Both the position numbers and the translations under genes were made by a program. From Pavona decussata (taxonomy: Eukaryota), in contig CDRNST010000010.1 of NCBI GenBank assembly GCA_977016875.1, forward strand, positions 186,001 through 250,000: DNA of 64,000 nt. Reading direction: 5' to 3'. Numbering within the stretch: position 1 is the first letter of the stretch; each line of letters starts with the position of its first letter. The notes beneath the pieces were generated by a model. That model ran no database searches, had not been told where the DNA came from, and saw nothing but the letters and a program-made list of their open reading frames with translations. Below are positions 1,146-64,000 of the stretch, piece after piece.

Positions 1146-1389
1146 GTAATGTTTAAAACACGAGCAGCAGTGTTTTATCGAGATTTAAAACCACGAGGCG
1201 CACACGTCTTTAAAGTTTTTTGAATGGCTTCAAAAACGTTCCTGGAAAAGCGTGTCAAGAGAAAAACATTAAACACCGCATACTAATAAGGAGGAGGTTT
1301 GGTCGGTTTCTTAAACCACTGCACGTGATTTTTTATCGACCATTTGATAGGTCAATGGGCTTATGAATTATTAATGAGTCTTTTAAAAA
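1146..1389. repeat. Dispersed repeat (second copy at 45094-45399)
   Basis: Shares GTAATGTTT.AAACACGAGCAGC.GTGTTTTATCG..GAGAAAAACATTAAACACCGCATACTAATAAGGAGGAGG..CCATTTGATAGGTCAAT with the 45.1-kb copy. Confidence 0.85.
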
Positions 1390-1586
1390 TTCTTCATATT
1401 TGGTCGGTCAAGGTTGTGACTTTCTGGAAGATGGTTTCCAGTAGCTGAATATCTATGTTCATTAATGCATTGAAAGAGGTGTCAGAGCATGTATCCGACA
1501 TACCTTGAATTACACAAGTTACATTTGAATTCGTAAACAACACATTGCTGATTCACTAGTTATGGATTGTTTTCTGTCACTCTTAG

Positions 1587-3380: not shown

Positions 3381-3971
3381 AGGTCTTGGATGAGTTTCCT
3401 ACTCGTGAAGATGGGTTGTAAATTGTTGAAGATTTTTTCTAATCTTCAAGGAAAGATCACGTCAATCTCTCCGTACAATTTCAGCTGAGATTTGGTCTTT
3501 AAAGGCAAAGTAATGCGAATCGGGTTGCACGGACAATTTAACATCCTAAAAAATGCAGAGGGAAGTTGCAATGTTTGATTTATTAAATGCTATTGATTAA
3601 GGAAAGAAGACCTACTTTAAACACGTAAGCGGACTCCATTCGTGCAAAACTGTTTACTTAGCTGATATTGTTTACTTAGTTGACATTACTCATTTTCACA
3701 CTTAAACTGCCATAAATTCTAACCTACAGCCTTAATAATTTACATTTGATAATGGCAGAATGACGCCGAAACGTCACATTCTCTCGTTAATATTTCTTTT
3801 AAACAAAAAAGACAAATGTACGAGGAAAAAAGGATGACACGAACTGCCAGGCAGGAGGAAGGCGTGCTTTTAAGGTGCATAGGACATGAATGCTAAGACT
3901 TTGAAATGCTCTTGGTTCGTTACACATGCCAAAGGGAATTACCCACTTAGTGGTAAAACGGAAATAATTAC

Positions 3972-4167
3972 CAAATCTCTGAAGAAAACAGGGCCATAGT
4001 TTCCATGTTAAAACGTGCTTGAGAATTGCTTTGCTTGGGTCTCCTGGTGACTGTGGCCAACATCTTGTTAGCATCAAAGTAAGCAGATCTCGACACTTCG
4101 AGGCTTGGGGAGACTCCAGTCCATGCTTCCACAGGTTGTTGACCACTTCCTCACCTTCACTTCCCCT
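3972..4167 (-). CDS. RNF213: RNF213-A exon 15
   Basis: LLTLMLTRCWP..ILKHVLTWKLWPCFL; donor G|GTAATT, phase 1; next exon not found in the window. Confidence 0.82.
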
Positions 4168-22100: not shown

Positions 22101-25100
22101 TGATTACCATAGAAATTACCTAGCAATAGTGGCACCTTGCTAAAATGTTATTGACATTATCAGTAGCATTATCTGTTTAGTTTCTTCTCTTATCAAGCAG
22201 CCTCCCCTGCCCCGAACTCTCCACCCTCTGGCTTTAACCGTTTTGAAAAGTTCCCTTGAGATCGATGAAAGGTTTTTTTTTATACATCCTCCTAACTGTG
22301 CAAGAAAGAAGGTAAAACTGCAGATAAAACTCCCCCTGTAACGGTAGTTTGTATTCTTGTCATACCTTGCCGACAGAGTTTAACTTGAGAGCGTCAAGCA
22401 GGTGCGTAACCGGGCGCATAACCAAAATGTAATATGAGAGTTTGTCAAATTATATGTGACATTTCGGTAATCGACTTTTGGGCAGAATTTGCCTAAAACT
22501 GCCCCCAGAAGTTAAAGGAAAAATGAAAACAAAGAAAACCCACAAAGGTATGGTTTTGTAAACTTAAGTTCCATTTCTCTGTTCTCTTTTTAACGAAAAC
22601 GGAGATTAATTTCGATCGAATTTCAGGTCCATACCAACTCTCATATTACTCATTAATTACACGTGCTACAACATCTGAGGAAAAAATTGAGCATACTCTT
22701 TATGTGGAGGATTAAACCAAGCTGAAACCAGTGGATAACTTCCTTCTCACATAGCGGTGACTGGTGTGTGAAAGGGCAATTAAGAGCAAGTATCAAAACA
22801 TCCCGACTTTGTTGGTCTCGTTTCTAATTCACGTAGAGCTTGCTCGCAGGCAGCTCGCAGGCTACAATCCACCAAGGGGCGACGGCGGTTTAGAGATTTT
22901 TACAAATACATAAGAACATTAGCCTGTCTATGTTGACAGGAAGGCTTACATTATGCAATTCACAGTAATATCAACTGCGCAATGGTGATACGAATATCAT
23001 CTGAAAAACAGTGATTAAGGACTTACCTCGTACAACGACATGTTGAGAAACTCAACGTGCCAGTTACCAGGCGAGTGAGTGCACAACTTCCCATCACATT
23101 CCTCCCAGTAGGATACATGTTTTTGGTTTGCGGTTTTGTGGTTTCTTATAAACTGTTGTATCGAGACAGTATGACAAAGTGAAAGGGGCTTTGGGCTGCT
23201 ATGGAACCAATTTTGTTTTAGCACCTAAGATAGTGTGTGAATTGAATTCAAATAAATTAGCAATAATGTAAAAATTACAGTTCGTTCTCAGGAAACTTAT
23301 CAGTGTCACATGCATCACGTTACAGATAACGCAATACACTCAGATTCTTAAATAACATCGACGTATGGTAATATTTAGTGAATGTCAGGTATTAGATGCC
23401 TCTCAGATCTCAGCAAAATAGGGCAAAGAAACAATACCTGCAATAAAGGAAACTACAGTCTTGACTGTAATTGTATTGAAATAAAGTGTCATCCATCCAT
23501 CCATCCAATTTCGTTTACTTTTTGTTAGTCGAACATTGGCTCAATAAAGTTGAGGTTCTCATTGCACGATCATTGAGCAGCATAATTATCCTCACCCCCC
23601 ACCCCTACCCCTCACTCCCGGAATAGACTTGCCGGTTGTGTTCGGCTGTATGTAAATTCAGTGTTTACGTCCTGATCTTGTCTATTACGTTTGACACCGA
23701 AGGGCGATTTATCGCTCTGTAGAATAAGTTATTCATTGAGTTGATTTTACGTCCTTGTTTTTTGTCCTGTAATGGCGGCTGATGGTGAATACATGCACTA
23801 TAGGTTGACTCATAAATAATTTATGTTTTTGATTTAATTCCGATTAAATTGACATAAAGTTAACAACACATCGACCAAGTGACAAAACACCACATCGCGA
23901 TAACTCGTTCATTGTGCATGGACGCATTCACGAGTTAAAAAGGTGTTGTTTACCATATCGCAAGGAAACTTTAGAACTAGTTTACAAATAAATCTAATCT
24001 CTACAAGTTGACCTTTGTTCCCCAGACAAAACTGATACAGCCAACTCTCTCCAAGCAGAAAGAAGTCTAAGGTGGTCTCCTCCCTGACGCGACCCTGGAT
24101 GGCTAGTCCCGATTGAATTTCCTTTTGCCGTCTGCACTTAAATTCTCTTTAAGCCAGACACCTCTTTAAGGTGGATAGCTTAGCTTTAAGGCGGATGTAC
24201 AGCATGAAAAGCAATTATAGTTCATTCCACTGGAATCAAAGAAGAGGTGTTTTCCGAATCACGTTTCAAAGAGACTGTAAATATGCAATTGTAACTTGCC
24301 TTAACAATCATCACATTCCAGTTCTGATGTCACTGATTTCTGGTGTCAAGTTGCATACACTATTTATAATGAGGACACCTCTCTAAGACGGAGAGCTAGA
24401 ACTAGTCCCATGGGTGTCTGCTTTAGAGAGAGTTGACTGTATCAGTGAGTTGATTAAATTTCAAGATCTTGAAGACCAACAGCACTTCCAAATGTTAGCA
24501 ACATTGATTTTGCAACATTCTACTCATGCAGTGACTTACTAGCACTCTATTTTGTTTATTTATTTATTTATTTTATTTTTTTATAGTCATCCTGACTTGA
24601 TAAGATTTATCTTAGAAACCAAAGACTCAATTCGTCAATCAATCTGATAAATTAGGGTTCTAACTTAAGCCAGCAACTTTTTTCCTCAACATTACATTAG
24701 CATTAATTTTCAATACCATAACCCAAAGGGTTGCTAATGCAATCTCAATCTATATGTAGCTGCCTATAGAATTTTCTTCCTTTGGTCGATAGTTGGCCTT
24801 CGGGGTGCACACCCCATTTTTACATGCACCATCATCAAAGAGTGTTAAACAGAACTGCAATAAAGCAGCATTGTCAACATTTTTGTTCTCAACATTTCAG
24901 CCACTAGGCTATCGTAAAACCATTACACCAATCCCTCTTGGCCTCCACCAACTTTGAAAGTTGATTCACTCAGGTCATCGCCATTCACTAACTGTCAGCT
25001 AATAAAATTTTTAGCTTGTCTCATAAAATTGAAACTCCACCTTTTGATTGTTCCAATCAAAGTCCAAAAATAACTTTTATAATTTTATAATTATACTCTA

Positions 25101-28100
25101 GATGAAAAATGGACTGACTGATAGAACAACTAATTTTACTTAAACAGTTAAAGAAATGTATCAATAACCAAGCTACTTTACAAAGTATGAGTGCAATACG
25201 TTTAAAATGCTATAGCAAACTTACCGATCAGCTGGATACACCTCTACAACATTATCTTGGAAACTTCCAAACAGGGATCCACCAAACCTCATGAAGATTC
25301 TGTCACCTTCACTGGCTTCAAATTTGAAATGTGGTGCAAGCACAGCATGAAAAATGACAGTCATTTTGGCTCCCTTGTATTTTTTAAAATACTCCAACGC
25401 TGTACCTTCCTTCATTGTTTTCTTCCCTTGGTCATCTTTGTCAGGGACTTTAGTATGATCACCTTTCTCCTTTTCAAGGCGTTGGCGGCCCTGATCATTG
25501 TCAGGTTTGCCTTTCTTGTTGTTTCCACTCTTACCTTTCCCTTGCTTTTGGTTCTTTCCACCACTCTCTTGGATTTTCCTCCTAGCCAGAAAAAAATTCT
25601 TTATCATTATGTGTACGTTTGAAACCACTAATAGGTTCTTTCATCATTAAATCTTTTCTACGCAATTAGAAAGTATGCCTGAAAAACCAAGAGATAAACA
25701 CAATACTCAAGACCATTACAGTAGCCAATGACTGTAGAACGTGTCATGTCCAAACCTTGCCTATTATCATCATAATCAGCGGCTACAGAGATTACATTGA
25801 AGATATCAACTCAATGGACTGGTTTCATCAGACACCAAAACAGAAGTGCAAAAATGGGCTGGCCAATTACTAATGATTCTCATAAGATTAAGTTGAAACA
25901 GAGGAATATTCTTCACCAAAAAAACTGCCCTGGTGCCCTTTTAGCTGCCATGGTGACCAGAAAATAATTCCACATCATATTATCACTACAAAGACAGGCA
26001 CAATTGAAAGTGAGGCATTTAAAACAAAGAACAGATTTCTAAAACAACATTTCTAAACAAGATTATACTTTCAAACAAAAAGGTTTCATTTATCGAAAAT
26101 TTGTATTGAAATACAAGCTTCCGATTCCATCTCGGAATCTTTGTCAAGTGGTGTAGGACATTTTGTCACATGATTAAGTTGATAAAATATCATGTGACAA
26201 AACGTCCCGATAGATCGCCGGGAGCTCACATCTAACGTCATGATTCAATGTCAGAGCCTGGCAATGAGTTTCTATAGCCTCTCTAATTCTCCTTTTGAAA
26301 GTGTCATTCTCCCTTACAAAAATTGACAAGGAAGAAAGATCGAGCGCGTGCTTCATGTTCCTTAGGTGGTCACCCAATGCAGTCGTTGACGATCTTGTAC
26401 TGTTGACATGTTCTCTAAATCTGACCCCAAAGAGTCTTGCGTCTCCCCGATATAAACCTCTTCACAATCCCTGCAAAGTATTTTATAGACCACTCCACAT
26501 TTCTTTTCCATGGGTGTGGGACCCTTGGGGTGTACCAGCTGTTGTCTTATGGTATTTACAGGCTTGTGACAAGTGCCCACCCCTTGTTTTCTGAAAACTC
26601 GTGTGAGTTGCTCAGAAACTCCTTGCATATAGAGGAGAGGGATGCTGATACTGGAACCGCCTTTGTTGGCTGTGCCTTTGGGTTTGTGGGTCGTACCTAG
26701 AGGGGTCTTGAAAATCCAAGGTTTGTAGTTATTATTCTGGAGGACTGACCTCAGGTGTTTCATTTTGGTTTCTTTATCCTCGATCCATCTCGATCTTTCT
26801 TCCTCGTCAATTGTAAGGGAGAACGACACTTTCAAAAGAAGACTTAGAGAGGCTATTGAAATTCATTGCCAGGCTCAGACATTGAATCACAACGTTGGAT
26901 ATGAGCTCCCTGCGATCTACCGGAATGTTTTGTCTCGTGATATTTTATCAACTTAATCTTGTGCAAAACGTCCTACACTACTTGACAAAGATTCTGAAAC
27001 GGGATCTAAGGCTTGTTTCTCAATATATATTTTCGATCCTGAAAATGAAACCTTTTTGTTTGATACAATATGACAGGATTAAGGAACAAATTATTTTTTC
27101 TCTAAGATTATTCTTACTGTGCTTTTTCGCATTCTGCTTCTCCTTTCTTCTTTTTCTTCTCTTTCTCCTTCTGTTTTCGTTTTTGGGAAGAACTTAATGG
27201 CTTTTTTCCCGCTGACTTGAGTTGTGCTGCCTCATCCTTTGAATCGGCCTCCTGATAGTAGACAATTTTAATTTTAATTGGATGAATTAAAATTCACCAG
27301 ACACAACATCCTTGGAAAAAAGGCGTTCTTTACCTATTAAGATACACTATAACAATTATGGTAAACGTAGCAGTTACATTGTGGAATAAATTGCATTTTA
27401 GAATTGCTTAAGAAATAGCTATCCAAAACGAAAAAAGTTTGGAAAATGACATCCAGAACAACATTTTTTAACACTCAAAGTTATTCCTGCATTAAGCATA
27501 CATACAAATTAACCGTCAGGCCAGAAAAAACCATACGCCAACAAGCAAAGAGTAGTTGTAGTTTTAGAACGGATAAGGGGGTTAGTTTCTAAAGAAAATG
27601 TCATACTACGACAGAAATAAATGTTTGGTTTTACCACGATGTAGAGAAATGCCATGAACTACCATTTGTCGGTATCATAGAAAGCCGCAAACGTTTAGAA
27701 CAAAACTTCATCTTCCAAATCTGCACCCTTAATCTCCACAGAACCAAGGAACATTTTTCATTTGACTAATTTATTCTTGTTTTCGACGTTACCATGTTCC
27801 CACCATTGTTCACTGTACAAACCACATACGACCCACAATTCTTTGAGTTGCTCCGACAAAGGGCTAATGCTCGGAACATCAGAACTCGAATCTCTTTACA
27901 GTGGTGAAATTATCTTATCAACTCTGTTGATAAAACTAAGCATACATGTAGTTTTAGAATAGCTTTACAAACTAATCCAAAAATAGACAAGCTTGGAAAA
28001 TAATATCCACAAACAATTTTTTTCTCAAAGTTGTTTCTGTAAAGTGAATATAAAAATAAGGCTCACCCGAGAAAAAATAATTGCACACCTGCTTGGATGA

Positions 28101-50500: not shown

Positions 50501-53500
50501 TCAAGCAATCATTAGGGCCAATAAGAAATCGATTTTGAAAATTTTGTTGTTGAGTACTCCTGGATAGTGTTTTATTGTGTGGGAATTCACAGTCTGGATA
50601 GGGTTTGCTAATCACCTCCCACCATTTTTGTTTGCTTGTGTTTCTTCGTTTTTGCTTGTTTTTTTGTCCACCATTACCAACCTTCACAGCAGTTTATAAT
50701 TGTTAATTATACTTCACTTCATTATGGTTGTAAGTTAGTCTACTGCAAAAGCGCATTTATCTATTAAGTCCCCCCAAAAAGTAATTGATCGATTTTAATT
50801 CCTTCTCTCAGAATTGAATGTAAACACAAACCTTGCTGGTCGAGACTCAGTCTCACAAGATTCCATGCATTGTTAAAGCTCGCAATCAGAGAAGCGATTT
50901 CATCTCTTGCTGCTTCTGTGAAGAAAGACGTGAAAGGTATTGTAATATGATATGTAAAAACACTACAGTCAAACCCGGACTGAGAGGAAACCTTTAGGGC
51001 AAAGCCTACGTCGGCTGTAACTGTGTGCGCTCAAGTAGTTGGCACCTTTTCGATTCAAGACCTAAACCTGCTGTAAACAGCGGAAGGGCTAGCAAGAACG
51101 ACGTGGCATTGAAATAAATTATCTCCCGGTGAGGTGCATTTCGGGCATAATGGAAAAAACAACATCAATATTTCAAATAGAACAAAACAATTCAAGAATC
51201 CCAGCAAGCGTGGCCGGTTGTGGATTGTGGACTCGGGGCTACCGAGAAACGACTCCAGGTAGCGGCCAGAGCAGGGCTTGAACCCAACCGCTCGGCCATG
51301 CTGCTCCAATCAAATAGGGCAGATGGTTGATAAAGTTTCCGTTAAACACAAATTTAATACAAATGGATTCCGTCTGGGCTGAATGGAAAAGGAGCACCTG
51401 TGTCAGTCGCCTCTCGCATGGAATTGGAAGCTTAGAAACCTTGCTTATTGTGCAGGGAGGAAACCCTTTGTGCAAGGCAGAGAAGAACCATCAGAATCTT
51501 CATGATGCCGAGTGGGAGACTTGAGCGCAGGTCAGGTGGGCAAGAAGTGCTGCCACCACTGTGTCTCCCAGCTGCGACTAATATAAAATGTCATGTGAAG
51601 TGCAATACGTTTAATTCTACGATATGATTGGCCACTTACTGGAAGGCATTTTCCTCAGAAAATCTCTTATCTTGATGTTCTCCGCTTCCGTTCTGTCGAT
51701 TCTTCGGTGGAATTTGTCCATGAGAAGGCGTTGCAGCTTAACGATATCCGGGAGAAAACGGAGGGCACGAAGTTTGTGTTCCTGTAACAGGACAAGGCAG
51801 AAATAGAAATGTTAATATGAAAGAGGCTGCTATATGCTCTCCTTTATTGAGTTTTTTTTATTCAAGACCACGTGAATTGCATTTTTCCTTAACCCTTCAT
51901 TAAATATGGCCTTATCTAAGAATTGAAAAGTCGAATCAATTGATGAAGGTTTCACACTCCTTTTTGCAAGTAGGTTTCCGCTAGAGTAATTCAAACGCAG
52001 GACAAATCGAAGTCTCTAACTGTGTGGTAAATAAAACTTAGAGTATTTATCCACTGGCCAGTACAACCTGAGGTCAGATAGAACCAAGTATCCAATACCA
52101 ATCAGGACTGAAAGATTCAAGAACTTTGTAACCATGAAGTACCAGACTATAATCTAGATTTCTCGATTATGATTGTTAACATTATTAATCCCTGAATTGT
52201 AATCGGTCAGGAATTCAGTCATGGACTGCAAATGAGTAGAATAAACTATATTACTATTACTACTATCTATTCTGGAAGAGGAATACAAGGAATAGACGTT
52301 ATCCGTGTTCCTTTGGGGCCTATTCTGTTTTCGGAATAAACAGAGTAGTCTTCTGGTCATTCTATGCCTGAAATTAATAAAAGGAATGGCAGCATTCCTT
52401 CGGGAAGGTTGCCAGGTGAATGGGAATAGGCCGAATTGCTCCGTTTTGGGAACCCGTATTGTCTATTCAGTTCTTCCCGAACCGGAATAAGAATAGCTAG
52501 AATTGCCCCCAAAAGAATGCTCACTTAGTCTGTTGGTCAAGTCAGCTTATTGCCATCTAAGGAATTTTTTTCTGTTACTTTGTAACTAAATTAATAATCA
52601 GAATAAACGTTAACTGTTTCCTCGGCTGATTGAAACCTCTGAGATGGATAACATTTACAACGTGCCAGCGCGTAAAATAATGGATTATCAAGCATTTTGA
52701 AGAATATTCAATAGTTGACCTAATACCCGTGTGAGTTTGTTTACCTGTTGTAAGAACTCAGCTAGCACTTTGTTCCTCTCAGGATCAGTAGACAGCACCT
52801 CTTGCTGAAACGTGTGTGAGAAGTGATCCAAAGTGACTTGAGTCCGATACCTCCATAGGGCGGGGCAGGTAGGTAAGATGCCTTCAGTCAGGGTATCAGG
52901 AGGAACATCTACCTCGTACAGCTGGCGCATCAGGGGGTTATTACCTACAGAAATAATAATATTATAATACAGTCGAACCTCCACTAACGGCCACCTCTCC
53001 ACAGCGGCCACCTCTCTACAACGGCCACTTTTTTTGTCCCGGCGGACAGTCCATACATTACCTCTTGTTTAAACCTCTCTACAACGGCCACCTCAACGGC
53101 ACTAAAGTGCGTCCCCAACTGCCAAAATAACCTCTCGACAACGGCCAGTATACAGTTCCTTTTTGTAGAAACATTTTTTTTTTTATAAACTGATGCAGTA
53201 ATCAACATTTGTCTTCGGAACATTACGTTTCTGTATTCATTCTAATGATACACTTATTTTGATTGTGTGCCATTTATATGCTGCGGAAAGCATAAATTGT
53301 CTCCAATAATATAGCGAATGTTGCGAACCTTGCTCGTTTCGTCTTGTTAACATTTTGATTCAAAACACTATTTACGTTTTATCGTGTATTTTATCCATAT
53401 ATATATTATTTAAGATTAGATTGTCATTATAGGCTACAGTAGGCATGAACTTGGCACAATAAACATGTTGTACTTCCCGAAAAAAAAAGGTGTCATATTA

Positions 53501-56500
53501 CACCCCTACCTTCCCATAACGGCCACCTCTCCACGACGGCCACTTTTTTCTGTCCCCAAGGTGGCCGTTGTGAAGAGGTTCAACTGTATTATTAAAATAT
53601 AATATAAGGTTTTGCCTTCAGTTTGTCACCTTTTTGCATAGAGAATCAAGGCTTGACTAGCATAATTGGTTCCACAGAACCATTAAGGGACCCTAAGAAA
53701 ATGCTTTGAGTAGTGATGAGATGGACTCGCAGACCTTTAAGGGGAAGTAGCACTTCTCCTATTTGCTTCTTGGTCTAGAAAGCGGAGTTAAACTGCGACT
53801 TTATCTGTCTGGTCATGAATGTAACAAGGAAATTTAGCTTACCCAGTCGATTGTCACCGACCAACAGCCCCAAACAACGCTGAATCTTTTCTTCGAGGTT
53901 CTTAAAAAAATGACCATTAAACATTTTAAAACACATAAATATAATAAACAACTGAAACCAAATATAACAAACCAAAAGAGAGGTGGAAATGGACATACCG
54001 TTAACACTGGGGTGACCACACTGGTGTTGAACATTGCTTCCCATTCTCTTCGGGAGTCCTTGGACATCAGATTAGGGGCGACATCTATGGCTTGTTGTGC
54101 TAACACAATAAAAGCGGATAAAAAGCGTACAGTCAAATTAAACATTGGGGTGTGACTTCTTCAAAAGGCGCAAAGCTTTTGGGTATATATTTTTTTACTA
54201 TGGGAAAGAGGAGGTTGCAAGGCACGTGTTCCTGTTCACCCTTTCACGTCCTGCGGGTCTTACAATGTCCCCTGTACTTTTCAACAAATGGCGGAAGTTC
54301 TTCTTTGGCAAAAGCTAAACGACACTAATTGTAGTTATTTTAAATACTTTCACGTTAAAGTACCAAAGCCCTTACTTAAAATTTAACCCAGAAGAGCATT
54401 AACGAGGGCAGAGCCCGACCAACTAAGCAAATGTTGTGGATACAAAACAAGTCATTATATTGCTAAAGCAATGTTGCCCTTTTTGACCGTTATGCGTCTC
54501 CACTTACGGTTAGAGACATGGGCAGTAATTTGTACAAGGACCATGTGGACGCATAGAACTGTATCGTCTACACTTCTCCCCAGGCTGTTAGCAAGAAGTT
54601 CTACATCCATTTGGAGGTGGTCCCACAAAAAGCGTGCCAACGCTACAGGAGGAACTGTGGGATGGATAAGGGCGCCCACGTCCTGAGAAAAAGACAATTA
54701 AATAACAAGCAACGACATCAGAATCAGGAAAGTTAAATCATATAGTCAATATTTACTCAGTCTACACAAGTGGGATTGTGAGGACGTATAATGAAGAAAT
54801 GCTTCAATGATGGTCTAACATTGTGAAATTGTAAGTGTGGTTTGACATATGACTGTTTCTAAGCAGACCTGTGGATGGCGGCAGGCTCCCTCAATCATGG
54901 CACAATGCATAAGGATCCTTGTAATACCAACAACTACAGGGGATAGGTTTCGCTCTGGAGCAAGAACTTTAGGCCTTGCACTGGGATGCCCAAGCACGTG
55001 ACCTGTCATTGTGCGGTCAGCTCTGCAAACACAAGATAAGACTGTAAGGAAGATGCCTTTTACTATGTTGAGACGTGGTGTGGGGGCGTATCCAAGGCCA
55101 GACGTGATTTGAAGAATGGCTGAAATCATTTATGTCAACGATATACTAACTGGTAAGCAAACATCGGTTACAGGTTAATAGTGGGATTATGCGCAGCTTG
55201 GTTAAGTTGTTAAGTTGTGTAGGCACTGTGTTGCTGGCAACTGATTGTGTATGGAAAACAAATGAAATTTTTTAATAGTTCACGTACACAATGGAATCGC
55301 ATCGGAAATGGGGTCGTGGACAGCCAATCAATCTGTTCGTTGGTTCAAGCATTGAAAGAGGTAAACAAAAAACACCAGCTACGGGGTTACATCGGAAAAC
55401 GAGCACTAAATAACATAATAGTGTTCATTTTACATTGACATATTAAACAATAAAAAAGTACAGAGTATGTTTGTCAGGTGGATAACAGTACCTTTAATCT
55501 GAAGATAAAGAAGCAGTCTCTGGTTAAGATAGAATTGGAAAGTAAATAAGCGAACTTCGGGTTCTACTGGCGTTTCCTACTTTGCTGTAACCCCAAACTA
55601 CTTTGTGACCCCTAACAGACAGTCCAGAAGATACAGCAGTGTCCTACCTCTGAGCCGTGGTATTTCCTCGGGAGAGATTGTACCCAGTGCCACCAATATT
55701 GACTTTGCACTCAGGGCAAACCTTCACTTCCACGGGACGACCACACTGCAAAAAAGTAACATTGTACTTGAAAGACACTAGTAATTAGGCGGTAGCAATT
55801 GAGCATAGTTTTCAAACAAAGTATCACTTGGACGAGTATTTTGTGTCCCTTCAGCCACGGAAACCATGCAAAACGCTAAGGATAACTCTGAGATTGAAAT
55901 GCATTCTATGCAAGGGAAACTAGCACTGCTCAGGCGTGTGGGCCTTTGGACAGAATGTTACTTTACCTTTCCTTAAGGACGATTAGTACGATTGAACAGC
56001 TTTAGTTTAAAGTGGCTATATTGGTTAAGAATACTTACATCTCCGATGTAATAGGGATGTCCTTTTGGGCACTCTACAAACAAGACAAGAAAGAACACAA
56101 CAGAACGTGTCAAGAATTTACACCATAATAATTTACTTAAGGTGTAGTTATTTTCTGCATATGAATGTAGCAGTCGCATTTGCCTGTGGGAAAAGTCTAT
56201 TGTTTATTTATTTTTGCACGGACAAATGAGAGTACTAGACATGTACGCTACAAAAAAATCCACCATAATGACAAATTTTCACGTAAAACAGATTACACTG
56301 AAATAGATCCAGTTTGTATGCCGAGCCCCCTAAAATTGGCAAAAATTACAATAAATCAGCCAGGTAACCACACAAAAAAAGTAGTACACTTTATGGTGAG
56401 AGAACACTGGACTAACACGAACTGAAGGAGAATTTCTTCTAAGTGAGTACATAGAGCAGTTTCCAATTAATTGTGTGTCGAAAGTAATTTGCGTTTGCTT

Positions 56501-59500
56501 TGGTTTTGCTTTACTTTTGCTCAGAGATTGCTTAGCAAATTCTGTGCCAAAACATGCCGTTTAATAAACAGGTATGTAGACAACCTGACGTTTGCTAGAC
56601 CACATAGTTATCCTGTTTGTAAATTCCTCACAGCACAATATACCATTTCCGATATATTAAAATTCTAGCTTGGCTACAAGGCAAAAGAAATTAATTATTC
56701 ATCTATGAACCTCAATAAAATTTCTGTTGTTTTAATACCCCAAGCCTCGTACCAAAGCTAGAATTTTAATTTGTCGGAAATGGCCTATATAGTAAACTGT
56801 AATACTTACGATACCAGCTTCCAGTCTCTCGCATCCCTGCCATTACCTCTTGAAGATTGTCATCAGGCATTGTGGGTAAATAGGCATTCTATGACACAAA
56901 CAACAGGAGCCTCATGAAATAAGCGCATGCTAAATGCGAGAACTGTTTTGAATCGAATTATTTCGAAACTGGGCAAATGTGGACTTCTATTATGTGACAT
57001 ACTGCTCCACGTTGTATCCTTGCCACTCGCAAAAACTGTTTTTAATTCTTCCATTTTTTGGACAACTTCCTGATGGCTTCAGTCTCAAACTATCGAAAGT
57101 AAGAAATGTGGGAGGATAACTTTTGAGTTTTCGTACAAAGTGAACATGGGACTCGACAAGTCATACTCCGCCACAATTCTTGCAATTTGTTCGGAGATTG
57201 GATAACGAGACCATCAGAGGAAAAAACACAAAGGAAAAAAAAAGTAGAAACTATGAAAGTTGCAACGGTACGAAGCGACCACTAAAATAAAATCGTGCGA
57301 AAATCTATCCAATTAATTGCATCCACATAATTCAGATAGTGTAATAGTTACCGAATAATCCTAAACGTCCTTATAAGAGATTTTGGGGTGACAAAAGAGA
57401 AGTTAAGCACAGACATTCGTGAGTTATGTATGGTAACCGGAAGTCAAATTTTCCCCTTGTTGCCTTGGTTTTGCTTGCAGCCAAAACAAAGCCAAGTACT
57501 GGATAAATTTTGTTCTGGTGTTAGTGGCTTGTCATTACAAGATGGCGTTAGAAAGCATCCAGAAAAGAAAGCATTCAATTTCGGTTTGCCGTCCGCGGCC
57601 CACGAACGTGTGTTTCTAAGTTCTGGAAAAGAATTAGGAAGATAAACTGCACCATTAGAGTCGCAGGGCTTTCCATCAGAAGTCGCAGTGGCTCACACAC
57701 AGTCAGATGGTTAATGCACTGAAGTACTGTTGTAGCATGGATGACAAGTTCTGCCAGGTTCTGCTCCATTGCTGAGCGACGGGGTACAACTCTGGTGCTG
57801 GGAGAGACAGCTGTACCCTGAGCGTTGTTCAGAAGTTGAAAGGCAAAAGGTCGGGTCTGAAAGCGCAAATAAAACCAACTTGAAAAAGCACAGATAATAA
57901 CCTAAAAGGTAAGAAGAGATCAAACCCGGACCAGTGGTACTGAACTCCAATTTTCTTTACATTAAGCTACCAAGAACATTGTTGGTTTCCCTTGGATGAA
58001 TGCTTGTCCATCTCACAGCTGCCCCGAGGCATTTTGTTTTAAGATTCCCTAAAAGTTTATTGGTACCTATTTTTTAAAAAAAGGTTCTGGTATAGGCATA
58101 CTTGACGAGTAACAGTTCCTCTGTAAAGACCAACAAGACTACGGCAACAAAAACTCGATCCGTCGACCTTATAAGACCAACACGGCCACAATATGGAAGT
58201 AGTCAAGTAAAGCTTTCTGTGCAAAAATGACAAAATATTAATTGCTCACTCACCCTGTCAGACAGATGGGCATCTTCTTGCAAAAATGTTTTAAAACACT
58301 GGTGAGCCTGACGAGCAAATCAGAAAGAGATACAAGAACAGTTATTTCAGGACTAGCCTTCCGTTTCTCCGAAATGCAGCCACGACAATAATTTCTATGA
58401 CATCCCACAAGTAGCTGTTTTTACATTACAAGGTAGCGACATTGTTCCCACGATAGTATGCATGGTTGTTTCTGCTTGGATTATTCTTGTGAAAGATAAA
58501 TGCAAGTCATGACAAGGTTTAATAACACTGGACATTCTATCCTCAGTTAGAACTCGACTTGCATTTTTGCATTCCATACATAAGAAGAAAAGCAAGGCAA
58601 CCGACAGGAGATTTATAAATCTCCACCACAGGGATTCTCGGCAAAACATTTCTAGATACTCGTTTTCTCATAGCCACACAAACACAAAACACTCTTCGTA
58701 CACTCACTTTTGTGGAGAGCTGACGCTGGGTGGAAGCGAAGCCGTAACACGTGGTCACTTCACGGTATTCAGACAACAGCATCATGACCTCTCTGACGAC
58801 TGGTGGCACAGCAGCGGCCTAAAGTGATATGTAAGCATGGTCAAATTCTATGGATCCTGGCATGCTAGTATTTGTGGCTGGTACAAGACGTCGATTGTGA
58901 AGCATGGTTTTTTACAGCCAATCGAATTTTGTGTGCAAATCCGCATTGCTTCAAGCATAATTTGTCGGCTATTGACATCCGGTCAATCTCCAGCAGCTCA
59001 AGGCTACAAATCCTGGGTTTGCCAAGAACAATTTCAATGGTTGAAACGACGCATAATTCATTGGTCATCATCGTCATCATTCTAACAACACTTTTTCAAA
59101 CATATCATGGAAAATGAAGAAACTCTTGGGATTTCAACATGCAAATACCATTGACGAGCGACTGAATACAAAAGCTGCAGGGTCTGAGATAACTACTTTT
59201 ACTTAAGACCTGCAGAGACGAGTTCGGTCATGAGGCTTACATTTCCCCTTATATCTTTCTCTTTGATCCATGAAATTGCTCGCTTACTCCAGTTAAACTC
59301 TAGATATTGTGTTATACACTATCTCAACTTGTCGTACCTGTAGCGTTTCAGTCAACTCCCTATGTGTCCCGCTCAGGACTGCTTTGGCGGTGGCTTCTCG
59401 GATCTTTTTGTAGTCTTCTCCATAAATAATGAATCTATCAGGAACAAGATCCTCTTGCTGTAAGAGAAAAAGATTATTTCTAACCAATTTATTTAATAAT

Positions 59501-62500
59501 GTTTACTGAAACTTAGTCGTCAAGTAAAAGAACTAGACGACTTCAAAATCAAGACTTTGAGAATTAGAACTACTTTAGTGTTACACCAACGAAGTCAGCT
59601 GGTAAAAACTTTTCTCAGCGGCTAATGTTATTAAAATATGAGCGTGTAAGTGATTCATGATCTTTATTTCATATGCAAATTACACGGTAAACCTTATGAA
59701 TCTAATTACAAATAATAATTCACCTGCTGTACTCTGCTCTCAGGTGGTACAATCCAGTCAAGGTCTTTCCTACCACACAACACATTGATAACCTCCACAC
59801 CAAACCTCCTTGCCAACTGCTTGAGGAGGTACAGTCGGGGAGCTGGATTAAAACTTTTGTCACACATTCCTCTCATTGCTTCAAAAAGGATTTGCAACTC
59901 GTTTTCAATTTGCCGATCATTCCAAGGACTTGTGTCTTCCACCGCACTTTTGTACATAAACTGGGCCGTCAGTGCTAAGATATAACGCGCTTTGGCAACG
60001 CCTTCCAACACCATGACATCAAGTTCTCGTGTGGGTTGAATTAAACTTGGTATCAGCAATGGTGTACATTCATCGCAAAGTTGCTGGGCTAGTTTTATCA
60101 TCACCACCAAATTCTCGGAGGCTTTAGCATACAGGCTGATAAGAGAGTCCTGGAAGAAAGTAACAACAAATTATCAAGATAAAACTGCAATGAGTTTGTA
60201 GAAAAAAAAACTTTTCTATCTTCCCACTGAGTACTGAACAAACAATCTCACCTCCCAACAGTGAACAAATAGTTGACAGACTTGTAACAGATGACCAATG
60301 TCTGGTCTTAGTCCTTGAGCCTCCGACAAGTATCGTGACAAGTGCTCTTTGACTTCTTTATCACTAAACGGAAATGCAGACATGTAAAACGTTTATTACC
60401 TCTTTTACAAAAGGGGACAGGAAAATAACGCAATAAAATGACGCAATAAAATTATCGTCATCAAAACAACTGACATTGAAAAAAAACTGCACATTGCAAT
60501 AAATATGGCGTCACGGTAACCACGTCAACTAGCGCTAATTTCACCACAGGTGTGCGGATTAAAGTTCTAGTAATGTAAAAAAGTATAACATAAGGCGTGA
60601 AATCTATCTTAAATGTGGAACTATGAAAGGGTCGTTCGTACGTTCTGAAGGCTGGTAGTATAGTGTGAGCCAACCGTGTTAGTCTTAGTAACAGACAAAA
60701 CGTCTTTTTACGAAAGAAACTTTGCTTCACTCCTTCACATCGGGAATCAAGGGCCTCCAGCTTTCAAGAATTTGTTTCCCATGGGAACTGTTTAGTTTGC
60801 CTTGCGAGATTCTGCTGCAGGCTGGGAGGGGAGGGGGCCTACGGGGTTGAGACCACAACGCTCTTAGCATGTGTGGGGAATGGAGAAAGAAACGGCTTTT
60901 CTTGACATGAACAAGCATCCTTCTGAAGCAGAAGAAATTTTAGTAGTTGCTACATGTTAAGAAATTCGGATGAGTGACCAGACTCCCTAATGTACAGGAT
61001 GGAAGCACATGACAACACCCTTCCCACTTTTTATTCAAATGTGTGAGCCCCGTGGCACCTTTGAAATGTGATTTGGAGAGCTCTGTGAGCAGTATTACCT
61101 TTGCAGTTAACCCAGATTACTAACACTGGAAAGGATATTTGAGTCGCACGGCACAGAACAAAGAAAACCTTTGACCTAGGTAGGATTTGAACTCACAACC
61201 TCCAGATGACATAACAGATCACCTCCCACTGCACTCATAGCTCAGTTGATAAGAATAACGGTTAACTCAATTTGAAAGCACAAACATATCCCCATGGCCA
61301 TGACTAAGGTTGCGTTCGATTGACTGTATTCCGGAATAAGAATAAGAGGAATAGCCGTAAGATTTCTCTTACTTTAGTAACTCCAAAAACCTCTCAGAGG
61401 GATTTCTTGTCATCATTGTACGTATTCCTATTCCGGAATAAGATCAATCGAACGCACCCTTAAACTTTTACCAGAACGCCACCTAGCTCAGTTGGTTGGA
61501 GCGATGATGATGTGATCAGGAGGTCGTGAGCTCAAATCCCGCAATCTCAAGATCTTTATTCTCGGGACCCTTATGTCATTCCGGGGGAGTTTCAACGACA
61601 CTACTGCTCACTCTAGAACTCTTACATGTACTTTAGCATGACTTTTGTCACCTTTAAAACATACCCTGTTCTCAACAGTTGCTGTAACAGAAATGACCTC
61701 ACTACAGGAGTTGCATCAATACCATGTTCAGGGAAGGGAGAGAAGGCTTTAGTCTTGGAACTACCCTGTAACACATAACTCATAAACATGGAGAACAGTT
61801 CTGAGTCAATCACACCAGCCTCAGCACCAAAACAGAATAAGGAAACAAGCTCCATGAAGAATGAGTTACATCGGCGGCGGAAGTCATAGTGTTCACGTAC
61901 AGCTCTCCTACAAAACAAAAAAATAAAGCTAGAAGATAGAAATGGTATTTTTATTGAACATGCTTTCCACGCCTAATTCTGTTTCCTTGTGACATTCTGG
62001 CATTTATTTGTCTGATGCTATATTTTGACACAGACTGACAACAACTTCAGAGTATCCAATAATTGAATGCCACATGGTTTTAGATTTAATATTGATTGAT
62101 GCATTAAAAAATACTTGGATAGCGTCTTTCCTCGAACGTACTCTCGGGATCCAGTGCCCTTCCTTGATAGGTGCCCCCTTTGTGTCATGAAAACTGAGAT
62201 AAGCAAGAACCCCTCCCCCGTAAAAAGATAATAAATGGTGCAAGATGCCAGGGAATTCATTCTCCGTTAATTACCACGCCAGTTTGTTGATGACATGGAA
62301 TTTAAAACAAAGGAAATGCGCTGTTATACCTTATAGATTTGGTGGACACTATCCTGAAATCCTCAGGAACGTCTTGTTTGCACAATGGACAACTACGTTC
62401 CTGTGCAATCCACTCGGAAATGCAGGGAAGGCATATCACGTGACCGCATGGTATTTTCACAGGATCCTTCCCAGCTAAACCTTCCAGGCACACGGGACAT

Positions 62501-62515
62501 GTATTGCCACCATAA
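41333..62515 (-). CDS. RNF213: RNF213/mysterin-like E3 ubiquitin ligase, copy B (3' part, 25 exons, RING to stop; 5' part beyond window end)
   Basis: Exons 62515-62330, 61907-61665, 60363-60252, 60149-59724, 59457-59338, 58818-58708, 58307-58254, 57856-57653, 56888-56810, 56073-56039, 55745-55648, 55022-54869, 54682-54508, 54099-53999, 53900-53843, 52944-52745, 51781-51640, 50915-50832, 47942-47762, 46301-46094, 45705-45631, 44356-44159, 43432-43343, 41813-41641, 41501-41333 (3676 nt; all GT-AG, phases consistent, ends in TGA). RING, AYLPTMP, RZ finger, CNYSLEVGRG, LDIAIGFLSSTGG and CQLRHVISLW match the RNF213 E3 module and CTD. Confidence 0.93.
41641..41813 (-). CDS. RNF213: RNF213-B penultimate exon
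   Basis: DPFEQIADTYKH..LDRFVSEVLELILLNL. Confidence 0.87.
41859..42570 (-). mobile_element. CR1/L2-group LINE 3' end with (TTG)n tail
   Basis: IAKLRYFVP..IYQSLIHPYLTYGLAAWGQA..ILILQKRALR and SFSRL.VKLWNEIP; (AAC)n on the + strand at 41860-41888. Confidence 0.85.
42627..43007. mobile_element. Kolobok-type MITE (TTAA TSD)
   Basis: TTAA|AGGGGCAGTATCA ... TGATACTGTCCCT|TTAA. Confidence 0.8.
43343..43432 (-). CDS. RNF213: RNF213-B exon
   Basis: ttag|AQQCCQLRHVISLWRLLTLERARILIRRGE|gtaagg (a different frame from the ORF track). Confidence 0.88.
44159..44356 (-). CDS. RNF213: RNF213-B exon
   Basis: LSSLDIAIGFLSSTGGKADMLLNEYLRGVLRM. Confidence 0.92.
44905..44990 (+). repeat. Penelope pLTR/retrozyme-like fragment with broken hammerhead core
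   Basis: CTGATGATGACTTCCGCTC.GGTTGTCG..CAACAGTCCTTCT.AGGACTA..CCGGACGATCA; the GAAA core is missing. Confidence 0.55.
45094..45399. repeat. Dispersed repeat (same family as 1146-1389)
   Basis: Direct sequence similarity to 1146-1389. Confidence 0.85.
45631..45705 (-). CDS. RNF213: RNF213-B exon
   Basis: DERFAFSRDLQLDSVFAAVKVKVPQ|gtaata. Confidence 0.87.
46094..46301 (-). CDS. RNF213: RNF213-B exon
   Basis: LISYDAERDLLPLILAQCNYSLEVGRGTLVQYNWDALERQLIDRFIRGRP. Confidence 0.93.
46623..46847. mobile_element. Kolobok-type MITE (TTAA TSD)
   Basis: TTAA|AGGACCCTAGTCAGCC ... GGCTGACTAGGGCCCT|TTAA. Confidence 0.85.
46852..47620. mobile_element. Kolobok-type non-autonomous element sharing its TTAA with the previous one
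   Basis: TTAA|GGTGGCCGAACACAGTTT ... AAACTGTATTCGGTCACC|TTAA. Confidence 0.82.
47762..47942 (-). CDS. RNF213: RNF213-B exon
   Basis: PLAVLLPSTSGMGICSTALVFHLTMVHNEF. Confidence 0.9.
48500..50033. repeat. Degenerate GGTTGCA-based minisatellite, interrupted by an L1 fragment
   Basis: Units such as GGTTGCAGTGGTTGCAAA.GTTGCCAATTAAATATGTGACTATT at 48500-48930 and 49545-50033. Confidence 0.85.
48935..49545 (-). mobile_element. L1/Tx1 LINE 3' fragment (zf-RVT region plus poly-A)
   Basis: RSFQFKLL..TKTRLAKM..CTFCELEPETVYHL; T-run at 48935. Confidence 0.8.
50052..50479 (-). mobile_element. Probable solo LTR
   Basis: TGTTA...TAACA termini; TATA-like and AATAAA signals in the expected order on the minus strand; no clear TSD. 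Confidence 0.5.
50832..50915 (-). CDS. RNF213: RNF213-B exon
   Basis: LIASFNNAWNLVRLSL; phase 1-1. Confidence 0.85.
51640..51781 (-). CDS. RNF213: RNF213-B exon
   Basis: EHKLRALRFLPDIVKLQRLLMDKFHRRIDRTEA. Confidence 0.9.
52306..52522. mobile_element. MITE-like inverted-repeat element
   Basis: GTGTTCCTTTGGGGC..TATTC / GAAT..GCCCCCAAAAGAATGC. Confidence 0.5.
52745..52944 (-). CDS. RNF213: RNF213-B exon
   Basis: NPLMRQLYE..LWRYRTQVTLDHF..VLAEFL. Confidence 0.9.
52970..53586. mobile_element. Tc1/mariner/pogo-type MITE
   Basis: TA|CAGTCGAACCTC..CGGCCACC ... GGTGGCCGTTGTGAAGAGGTTCAACTG|TA; internal ACAACGGCCAC repeats. Confidence 0.88.
53843..53900 (-). CDS. RNF213: RNF213-B exon
   Basis: NLEEKIQRCLGLLVGDNRL|gtaagc; phase 0-1. 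Confidence 0.83.
53999..54099 (-). CDS. RNF213: RNF213-B exon
   Basis: LMSKDSRREWEAMF..PVL. Confidence 0.87.
54508..54682 (-). CDS. RNF213: RNF213-B exon
   Basis: FLWDHLQMDVELLANSLGRSVDDTVLCVH. Confidence 0.9.
54869..55022 (-). CDS. RNF213: RNF213-B exon
   Basis: DRTMTGHVLG..ERNLSP..RILMHCAM. Confidence 0.92.
55648..55745 (-). CDS. RNF213: RNF213-B RZ-finger exon
   Basis: CGRPVEVKVCPECKVNIGGTGYNLSRGN. Confidence 0.92.
56039..56073 (-). CDS. RNF213: RNF213-B RZ-finger micro-exon
   Basis: (Q)CPKGHPYYIGD; 35 nt; GAT|GTAAGT donor. Confidence 0.9.
56640..56788. mobile_element. Short MITE
   Basis: CCATTTCCGA.A.ATTAAAATTCTAGCTT inverted with AAGCTAGAATTTTAAT.T.TCGGAAATGG. Confidence 0.7.
56810..56888 (-). 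CDS. RNF213: RNF213-B exon (start of RZ region)
   Basis: NAYLPTMPDDNLQEVMAGMRETGSWY; compare human AFLPTMPED. Confidence 0.9.
57653..57856 (-). CDS. RNF213: RNF213-B exon
   Basis: LAELVIHATTVL..PLRLLMESPATLM. Confidence 0.87.
58254..58307 (-). CDS. RNF213: RNF213-B exon
   Basis: cag|AHQCFKTFLQEDAHLSDR|gtgagt; 54 nt, phase 0-0. Confidence 0.75.
58708..58818 (-). CDS. RNF213: RNF213-B exon
   Basis: MLLSEYREVT; tttag acceptor, AAA|GTGAGT donor. Confidence 0.85.
59338..59457 (-). CDS. RNF213: RNF213-B exon
   Basis: PDRFIIYGEDYKKIREATAKAVL. Confidence 0.9.
59724..60149 (-). CDS. RNF213: RNF213-B exon
   Basis: LEGVAKARYILALTA..PRLYLLKQLARRFG..WIVP. Confidence 0.9.
60252..60363 (-). CDS. RNF213: RNF213-B exon
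   Basis: DKEVKEHLSRYL..LFVHCWE|gtgaga; phase 2-0. Confidence 0.85.
61307..61459. mobile_element. PIF/Harbinger-type MITE
   Basis: TIR GG.TGCGTTCGATTGA..TATTCCGGAATA; TAA/TTA flanks. Confidence 0.75.
61665..61907 (-). CDS. RNF213: RNF213-B exon
   Basis: FRRRCNSFFMELVSLFCF..SPF..IDATPVVRSFLLQQLL. Confidence 0.92.
62330..62515 (-). CDS. RNF213: RNF213-B RING-finger exon (C3HC4)
   Basis: CPVC..PCGHVICLPC..W..CPLC; cag acceptor and AG|GTATAA donor. Confidence 0.92.
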
Positions 62516-62624
62516 CTGTGGAAACAGGTTTCAAATTCTACAACTTAATTCAAATTAAGCAGTAGGCACCATATAGGGCCCTATTCCACAGTCCGGGAAG
62601 AAGGAAATGATCACGATGATGATG

Positions 62625-64000
62625 AAGTTTTAAACTCCTTCCCTCCAAATAAGGTTCCAGGTAACGATGGATTACCGGTAGAATTTTACAAAATATTCTG
62701 GGCTTCTATTGGAAACCGTCTAGTAAAATGTTTTAATGTATCATTTACAAAAGGAGAATTGAGCTCATCACAAAAGCAGGCTGTAATTACTCTCATTGAA
62801 AAAAAGGACCTAGATCACTGCGACCTAAAAAACTGGAGGCCGATTTCTCTTTTAAATGTTGATGCAAAGATTGTTTCGAAAGTCATTGTCGAAAGGATGA
62901 AACGGTTGCTACCGGGAATAATACATCATAATCAAACTGGATACATTCCAGGAAGAAACATCGGAGAGAATATACGTTCAATTCTTGACATAATGAGTTT
63001 CACGCAAGCTAAAAATTTGCCAGGCCTTTTGTTATTTATTGATTTTGAAAAAGCTTTTGATAGCTTAGAATGGCATTTTCTTAAAAAGTGTTTGGAGCTA
63101 TTTAATTTTGGACCTGATCTTATAAGATGGGTTAATATTTTTTACAAAAATGTAAAAAGCTGCATAATAAATAATGGACTATGCTCCCACTATTTTAATG
63201 TTGAGCGTGGGGTTAGACAGGGAGATCCCCTCTCTCCGTATCTCTTTGTCATTTGTGTTGAAATATTGGCCATTGCAGTACGAAACGATGAAAATATTAT
63301 AGGGATTAAAATAAGTGATTCGGAAACTAAATTACTTCAGTTTGCTGATGATACAACTGCCATTTTAGCGGATTTGAACTCGGCTCAAGCTTTGCTTCAA
63401 CTACTTAACGATTTTGAGAAAGTCTCGGGCTTAAAACTGAATGTTATGAAAACAGAAGCCATGTGGATTGGATCTCTTCAAAATTGTGAAGACGGACCTC
63501 TGGGATTCAAGTGGAAAACATGTGTCAAATTTTTTTTGTCATTTTCATTACATCCGATGTAAAGATACTTGTTGAGAAGCACTTCAAACAAAGATTGAAG
63601 AAAATCGCAAATTTAATAAATCTTTGGAAGTCAAGAGGTCTATCAATTCATGGCAAAGTGAGCATTATCAAAGCAATACTTCTTCCCAAAATGATTTATC
63701 CTAGCTCTTTTTTCAGTACACCAGCCACGGTAATAAACGAATTCAACGCTTTGGTGTTTAATTTTTTGTGGAATGGGAAAGATAAAGTCATTCGACGCTC
63801 AACGTACGCGCCTTATGATTCTGGTGGTCTTAAAATGATTGACTATGAAACTATTGTAAAGGCATTAAGATTAAGTTGGTTAAAAAGAATAGTAGATGTT
63901 GAGTGTTGTGGCTTTTGGAAGCATTATCTCAATTATCTTCTGAGCAACAAGGGAGGCTTATTTTTCCTTGAATGTAATTATGACGTAAAGCAAATCTATG
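62625..64000 (+). mobile_element. 5'-truncated L1/Tx1-clade LINE, reverse transcriptase (antisense, in an RNF213-B intron)
   Basis: NKVPGNDGLPVEFY, NWRPISLLNVDAK, IDFEKAFDS, GVRQGDPLSP, LQFADD; one frameshift in the T-run near 63530, after which coding continues to the window end. Confidence 0.93.

Follow-up and report, generated by a model that had tools for sequence, protein, structure and literature searches.

RNF213-B, one of two tandem genes of the coral Pavona decussata for the giant immune ubiquitin ligase RNF213, carries Tyr in its RZ finger at the position of the catalytic general-base His. The 3′ part of the gene lies on the minus strand at 41153..64000 of the window analyzed here, a stretch of 64,000 nucleotides spanning positions 186,001 to 250,000 of contig CDRNST010000010.1 (C10:186001-250000), and the gene runs upstream past the window end, to at least C10:302376. 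In the sequences compared below, the data show a two-state (His/Tyr) site in an otherwise rigid catalytic domain, with both states under purifying selection and often kept as a pair. We favor, by a modest degree of confidence, the view that RNF213-B is a maintained gene with a natural Tyr-type RZ finger, a second active-site state in which ubiquitin discharge would be altered.

The Cys/His dyad of RZ fingers was defined only between 2021 and 2025, and is thought to explain the ubiquitylation of lipid A and RNA by RNF213 and ZNFX1. Tyr, with a pKa of ~10, works poorly as a general base at neutral pH, and Tyr and His lie ~4 pKa units apart. In AlphaFold models, H4537 of RNF213 adjoins C4516, and two papers from the Randow lab predict it to be the general base (PMC11549300; bioRxiv 10.1101/2025.10.14.682297). 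A preliminary description of the window, made by a model from the sequence, had attributed to this His a role in discharging ubiquitin from the RZ Cys. That role has experimental support: the mouse H4483A substitution lowers autoubiquitination (PMC12075652), and H1881N in ZNFX1 abolishes RZ-dependent activity (bioRxiv 10.1101/2025.09.05.674436). The RING of mammalian RNF213 is dispensable for activity (PMC11549300). We found no paper in the searched literature that mentions a Tyr at the H4537 position.

The RZ finger of RNF213-B

The RZ finger of RNF213-B is encoded by three minus-strand exons. The exons of the gene were searched one by one, and exons 1 and 2 of the finger were checked by alignment. 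Exon 1 (56810..56888, bordered by AG at 56890-56889 and GT at 56809-56808) encodes, in translation, the N-terminal helix of the RZ domain and ends with WY and the first base of a Gln codon; it is the same in RNF213-B and its tandem twin, RNF213-A, and is conserved at all coral-lineage loci. Exon 2 (56039..56073, AG at 56075-74 and GT at 56038-37) encodes (Q)CPKGHPYYIGD, with the first two zinc ligands (the equivalents of C4505 and H4509), and CPKGHPYYIGD is invariant in each related locus that yielded this exon. Exon 3 (55648..55745, AG at 55747-46 and GT at 55647-46) has the nucleophile Cys, equivalent to C4516, as its first residue, and contains the CPEC zinc pair (C4525 and C4528 equivalents) and the GGTGY loop. 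The exons join in frame as NAYLPTMPDDNLQEVMAGMRETGSWY, then Q (a codon split as C and AG between exons 1 and 2), then CPKGHPYYIGD, then CGRPVEVKVCPECKVNIGGTGYNLSRGNTTAQ, giving the reading ...GSWY-Q-CPKGHPYYIGD-CGRPVEVKVCPECKVNIGGTGYNLSRGNTTAQ from the end of exon 1 through exon 3. Within exon 3, the codon TAC at 55680..55682 on the minus strand places Tyr at the position of human H4537 and mouse H4483.

Exon 3 alone matches the Pfam family PF20173 (ZnF_RZ-type) with an E-value of 2.4e-10 and 40.3 bits, relative to a cut-off of 27, and gave no match when searched alone against PDB sequences. When a profile of the RZ fingers of this genome is aligned to human RNF213 in the PDB (8s24_A, E 7.7e-14), no gap is needed. 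The human row of that alignment is identical to the human sequence given in the preliminary description, and, given the 40-residue offset of the 8s24_A chain, the equivalences to C4505, H4509, C4516, C4525, C4528 and H4537 all hold. In this alignment RNF213-B keeps the zinc ligands (C and H in CPKGH, C..C in CPEC) and the nucleophile Cys. It lacks the general-base His, counted among the “two conserved histidines” when the RZ family was first defined; with Tyr in nine of 91 family members (see below), this His is not a universal feature of the family. These results bear out the preliminary description on several points: the three exons translate exactly as written there and align to the human protein without gaps, the residue equivalences are right, with zinc ligands and nucleophile kept, and the Tyr at the H4537 position is confirmed.

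A nearby His that might stand in for the missing one was also sought. No compensating His is present in the RZ exons of RNF213-B besides the zinc-ligand His, exons 1 and 2 are identical between RNF213-A and RNF213-B, and no consistent nearby His was found in other Tyr-type proteins. A universally conserved His ~20 residues downstream, in the motif TGH[IV]LG, is present in both His and Tyr types and therefore explains nothing about the difference between them. The exon core that carries it (54866..55024, minus strand), reading RADRTMTGHVLGHPS..., starts the C-terminal domain and is matched in collinear order by RNF213 proteins in tblastn. A search of RNF213-A and RNF213-B for an additional, alternative exon 3 of the kind present in the acorn worm Ptychodera (see below) found none, the next-best match having an E-value of 0.47.

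Among the ten RZ-finger exons of this genome, the H4537 position is His in nine and Tyr only in RNF213-B. Five of these exons are of the ZNFX1 type, and all five have His, with no Tyr among these copies. Three further RNF213-like copies of exon 3, on contig C58 (L008, L009 and L010), have CSKP or CGKP after the nucleophile Cys and are all His; in L010, two residues are inserted after the CPEC pair.

Tyr in coral-type relatives

Relatives were collected as small open reading frames covering exon 3, which occur among the public gene calls for eukaryotic contigs that lack annotation. With the 44-codon open frame surrounding exon 3 as query, a word search returned three clusters, in which the site is Tyr 16 times, His once and Cys once. 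The codon is TAC (Tyr) in the lineage ERZ25067862 (L037/L038), CAC (His) in two other assemblies (L044/L045) and TAT (Tyr) in Tara metagenome scaffolds (L046-L054). The lineage ERZ25071797 has a tandem pair of loci, L040 and L043, which lie 149 kb apart on one 3.1-Mb contig and have Tyr and Cys, respectively; L055, which differs from L043 by 0.3% and is probably its allele, has Tyr. L040-L042 all read Tyr. The site is thus encoded by CAC in RNF213-A and by TAC, TAT, TGC or CAC in the relatives, with TAC or TAT in four of the five lineages of close relatives. One Tyr-type sequence, P0142, is present on 22 contigs, and the six that were fetched, which come from different samples, are without exception Tara metagenome scaffolds. 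That independent assemblies of related organisms share the Tyr speaks against a base-calling error in RNF213-B.

The RZ core CPKGHPYYIGD/CGRPVEVKVCPECKV is invariant at all fetched loci, apart from one E-to-D variant (P0148) in Tyr lineages, and variation is limited to the loop around the His/Tyr site. Two side observations concern these loci. The allele-like pair L043:10001-10195 and L055:10001-10213, on contigs of one assembly, differs by 0.3% over 2,364 coding bases and has TGC (Cys) in the former and TAC (Tyr) in the latter, so a third state may be segregating at the general-base position. Separately, the exon after the RZ finger (54866-55024 in RNF213-B) reads TGHVLGH in all Tyr-type coral lineages (L040, L047, L037) and in RNF213-A, and TGHVLGD in L044/L045, the only long-standing His-type lineage. 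The last His of TGHVLGH may be a second His tied to the Tyr state, or may be chance; it is absent from the Tyr-type proteins of other phyla.

A bootstrapped distance tree of the coral-type loci, calculated from up to 1,269 codons, recovers RNF213-A with RNF213-B (100%) and L040 with the pair L043 and L055 (100%), and joins these two clades at 97.5%. L037 groups with L044 and L045 (100%), and the Tara clade is also supported at 100%. Between lineages, the synonymous divergence (dS) is 0.7-1.4 and the ratio of non-synonymous to synonymous divergence (omega) is 0.08-0.12. A Tyr root requires three changes (RNF213-A to His, L044/45 to His and L043 to Cys) and a His root five, and polarization by the L040 clade places a Y-to-H change on the RNF213-A branch. 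Since the outgroup lineages carry Tyr although the twin has His, parsimony indicates that RNF213-A reverted and that RNF213-B did not lose a His. Thus, Tyr is most parsimoniously the ancestral state in the coral-type RNF213 lineage, retained by RNF213-B, with RNF213-A having reverted to His. Among the loci sampled, Tyr is also the commonest state, and by the divergence estimates strong purifying selection has maintained it through synonymous turnover (TAC/TAT) at dS above 1. The preliminary description had implied the opposite direction, a His lost by RNF213-B, and this did not hold, as the outgroups carry Tyr and RNF213-A is the copy that changed. Its caveat that the variant could be a shared trait and not unique to this copy proved apt, given Tyr in the related lineages and in other animals.

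RNF213-B and its tandem twin

RNF213-B has the architecture of a full-length RNF213, comprising an N-arm, a dynein-like AAA core, an E3 shell with a RING, the RZ finger and the C-terminal domain. With four full-length RNF213 proteins as tblastn queries, its matches are collinear on the minus strand and cover residues 383-4734 of P0043 (C10:302376-230177); RNF213-A shows the same collinear pattern. Where they are most conserved, the AAA exons of RNF213-B share 58-67% identity with P0043. The RING exon (62305..62493, minus strand; these coordinates are those of the searched open stretch, and a few codons at its two ends may be intronic) contains CPVC...CGHVICLPC...CPLC and is a canonical C3HC4 finger by its Pfam matches (zf-RING_2, E 6e-10; zf-C3HC4, E 3.7e-8), as the preliminary description had it.

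A self-comparison of C10:90001-380000 revealed a ~110-kb tandem segmental duplication whose arms are collinear and ~80-95% identical including introns, which are themselves ~90% identical. Each arm contains one full-length minus-strand RNF213 gene, collinear with acorn worm and ribbon worm RNF213 proteins. The 5′ part of the twin, RNF213-A, occupies 1..33585 of the window on the minus strand. Its RZ exon 3 lies outside the window at C10:127991-128086 and reads ...KICPECKVNIGGTGHNLSRGNTMAQ, with His (CAC) at the site.

Selection statistics for RNF213-A versus RNF213-B were summed over separately aligned exon cores. Over ~3,570 paired codons, dS is 0.123, the non-synonymous divergence (dN) is 0.035 and omega is 0.28. 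The exon cores of both copies contain no internal stop or frameshift, the apparent stops and 1-nt gaps being either located in intron flanks or shared, and in-frame insertions and deletions total +6 and +3 nt. Derived changes relative to four distant outgroups are balanced, with 43 in RNF213-B and 38 in RNF213-A. When the differences are polarized by the nearest outgroup, the L040 clade, RNF213-B has 14 non-synonymous and 27 synonymous changes and RNF213-A has 26 and 13 (Fisher p 0.007). By these measures, RNF213-B is an intact, constrained gene and the more conservative copy, and RNF213-A is the copy evolving faster at the protein level. A pseudogene reading of RNF213-B is rejected on the intact ~3,570 codons, the omega value, the balance of derived changes and its slower rate. 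The idea that the variant marks decay is likewise not supported, as it is carried by the more conservative copy.

In RNF213-A, one 30-codon exon core outside the window (L016:4178-4267, which is C10:144178-144267) has nine residue differences from RNF213-B and no synonymous change; four of the nine changed residues fall where three outgroup proteins do not vary. A burst of change in RNF213-A could account for this, as could a mis-paired or alternative exon.

The 123-codon E3-shell exon of RNF213-B (59724..60092, minus strand), was used as a search query, and RNF213 proteins of Saccoglossus, Lineus, Glandiceps and Ptychodera matched it. An exhaustive search of proteins with this exon returned mostly single-exon open reading frame fragments and only four long proteins, and no annotated cnidarian RNF213 was among the matches, so statements on orthology are limited. 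In the public protein sets that were searched, these coral RNF213 genes seem to lack annotation.

Several other features of the duplicated region were observed. A 267-codon open frame resembling a reverse transcriptase of the long interspersed nuclear element (LINE) type lies at 62759-63562 on the plus strand, just upstream of the RNF213-B RING exon and opposite in strand, and is presumably intronic. The duplication blocks are interrupted by insertions of 6.4 kb in RNF213-B (C10:277657-284065) and 15 kb in RNF213-A (C10:150399-165770), both outside the window and probably intronic transposons. Upstream of RNF213-A, window positions 38500-38892 (C10:224500-224892) are 83% identical to C10:323935-324340, a match that marks the far end of the duplicated unit.

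His/Tyr switching across the RNF213 family

To place the coral genes among RNF213 proteins at large, we tallied 91 RZ domains. A region-limited search with Glandiceps RNF213 gave 86 long RNF213 proteins, and the family sample was word-seeded, not random. The nucleophile and the other Cys residues (four Cys positions) are invariant in 91/91. The H4537 site is H in 80 domains, Y in nine (from eight genes), S in one and a gap in one. Tyr occurs in two versions of one Saccoglossus gene, in Ptychodera isoform X1, twice each in Mercenaria and Mytilus, in Ruditapes and in one isoform of the bird Pseudopipra. Under a rough model of a free site, Tyr would make up ~1/4 of His replacements, and at least eight exclusive H/Y switches, a count estimated from trees, would have p ~1e-5. 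Switching between His and Tyr recurs in bivalves, acorn worms and one bird, with almost no other residue permitted.

On a tree of the C-terminal region, a quick one with some long branches, close bivalve paralogs of the His and Tyr types are intermingled. The Mercenaria proteins P0097 (His) and P0111 (Tyr) have near-identical flanks and a sharply diverged catalytic half of the RZ finger. The Ptychodera isoforms X1 (Tyr) and X2 (His) differ only in a stretch that starts just past the nucleophile Cys, at the point where RNF213-B has the start of exon 3; in these protein records, the pattern is the signature of mutually exclusive exons. As a separate observation, six RNF213-like proteins of Mercenaria and Ruditapes (P0086, P0096, P0097, P0099, P0102 and P0110) have a second zinc pair of CxC spacing (e.g. 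CQCGAEIGG) in place of CxxC, and this spacing variant of the bivalve zinc site is seen alongside His as well as Tyr.

Mammalian RNF213 (human C4516/H4537, mouse C4462/H4483; PDB 8s24, 7oik and 6tax) shares with RNF213-B the gapless alignment, the same zinc ligands (C, H, C, C), the nucleophile Cys and the placement of the RZ finger between the E3 shell and the C-terminal domain, with the RING upstream. RNF213-B differs in having Tyr at the general base and in belonging to a tandem pair whose other copy has His. The RZ finger of ZNFX1 (human C1860/H1881) is from the same Pfam family, PF20173, but has another host protein, a superfamily 1 (SF1) helicase, and the ZNFX1-type finger lies in one exon, not three. 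The Tyr-type RNF213 of other invertebrates (Saccoglossus XP_006816196, Ptychodera XP_070580813, Mercenaria, Mytilus and Ruditapes) and the Pseudopipra isoform have Tyr at the identical site with the other catalytic and zinc residues kept, and frequently form a pair with a near-identical gene or isoform of the His type. However, they represent independent switches on other branches, and the Ptychodera pair arises by alternative exons whereas the coral pair consists of tandem genes. RBR ligases and the RCR domain of MYCBP2 also have a free His beside the catalytic Cys as the general base for the acceptor (PMC12075652, PMC11549300), but their folds are unrelated and the resemblance would be one of working principle only.

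Interpretation

A two-step scheme would account for a maintained Tyr-type finger. Transfer of ubiquitin from the E2 to the RZ Cys is expected to still work in Tyr-type fingers, since all that it requires is conserved. Discharge would be the step that differs, as Tyr is far weaker than His as a base at neutral pH: Tyr-type fingers may discharge more slowly or more selectively, and would favor acceptors that are already good nucleophiles, such as amines and thiols, over hydroxyls of the kind found in lipid A. An animal with one unit of each type, encoded by tandem genes in the coral or by alternative exons elsewhere, would then have two acceptor chemistries. The preliminary description had predicted altered chemistry or substrate (e.g. 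not LPS), a stalled finger or reliance on the RING. Among the three options considered here (altered discharge, functional equivalence of His and Tyr, or a crippled domain), an altered acceptor preference or a longer-lived thioester is the most likely.

Several points weigh against this interpretation. Altered discharge is a step that we infer throughout, and the gene model of RNF213-B is derived from genomic sequence. A consistent second change accompanying Tyr, which might be expected if the chemistry had been rebuilt, was sought in the Tyr-type proteins and none was found. The 91-member family sample is non-random. A His ancestral to the RNF213-A/RNF213-B pair costs only one extra local step, and parsimony is weak at a site so prone to switching. 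This pair and the tandem pair of the second species could also be older duplicates homogenized by gene conversion. Finally, the related contigs are metagenome and assembly records, in which orthologs are inseparable from paralogs and independent species cannot be counted.

The competing explanation that survives best, although we regard it as rather unlikely, is that His and Tyr are equivalent. The site would need only an aromatic, hydrogen-bonding side chain by the thioester, for packing or for positioning the ubiquitin tail or the acceptor, and would drift neutrally, with RNF213-A and RNF213-B doing the same job. The frequency of switching, in both directions and even between very close paralogs, is consistent with this, as are the missing co-varying residue, the near-equal Pfam scores of the His exon (40.7 bits) and the Tyr exon (40.3 bits), the single transition that separates H from Y codons, and the mouse His-to-Ala substitution, which brings a reduction and not a loss (PMC12075652). 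However, Ptychodera holds both states as alternative forms of one exon and Mercenaria holds two sharply diverged versions of the segment inside near-identical genes, both of which are hard to explain if His and Tyr are equivalent. The difference of ~4 pKa units, a matter of general chemistry, also stands against equivalence, as does the abolition of RZ-dependent activity by H1881N in ZNFX1 (bioRxiv 10.1101/2025.09.05.674436).

It is less probable still that the Tyr-type finger is crippled, such that RNF213-B loads ubiquitin without passing it on (a stalled thioester), acts through its RING, or serves as a regulator or partner of the His copy. Loss of the general base is known to trap the thioester in Cys/His ligases of the RBR and RCR types (cited in PMC12075652), the RING of RNF213-B is canonical and the Tyr copy adjoins a His copy in this genome. 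Yet the RING is dispensable for the activity of mammalian RNF213 (PMC11549300), and in the ERZ25071797 tandem pair (L040/L043) neither copy has His, so there is no adjoining His-type partner. Moreover, Tyr lineages show no variation in the nucleophile Cys, the zinc ligands or the RZ core across dS above 1 with omega ~0.1, which argues against a dead domain, without showing which chemistry it performs. Artefact or decay, whether a base-calling error or a young pseudogene with a chance loss of His, would fit the single-base difference from the twin (TAC vs CAC) but is close to refuted by the same residue in independent assemblies and many Tara scaffolds and by the lack of a stop or frameshift in ~3,570 codons of what is the slower-evolving copy.

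Taking the Tyr-type finger as a second active-site state, we tentatively suggest a further step, which we hold to be possible but not probable: the His/Tyr position may be a built-in specificity switch. His-type fingers would ubiquitylate hydroxyls (of lipid A or sugars) and lysines, and Tyr-type fingers would form a separate catalytic class confined to other acceptors, or would be gated to preserve the thioester for an encounter with a specific target. Both types would be deliberately kept by marine invertebrates, in the form of tandem genes in the coral and of mutually exclusive exons in Ptychodera and possibly also in Mercenaria, and switching between them would be an adaptive tuning of an innate immune ligase. 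Whichever chemistry applies, a “conserved histidine” is an unsafe criterion for calling invertebrate RZ fingers active or dead. A natural, long-lived Tyr dyad, strongly selected and often found beside a His form, is a ready-made experiment on the role of the His.

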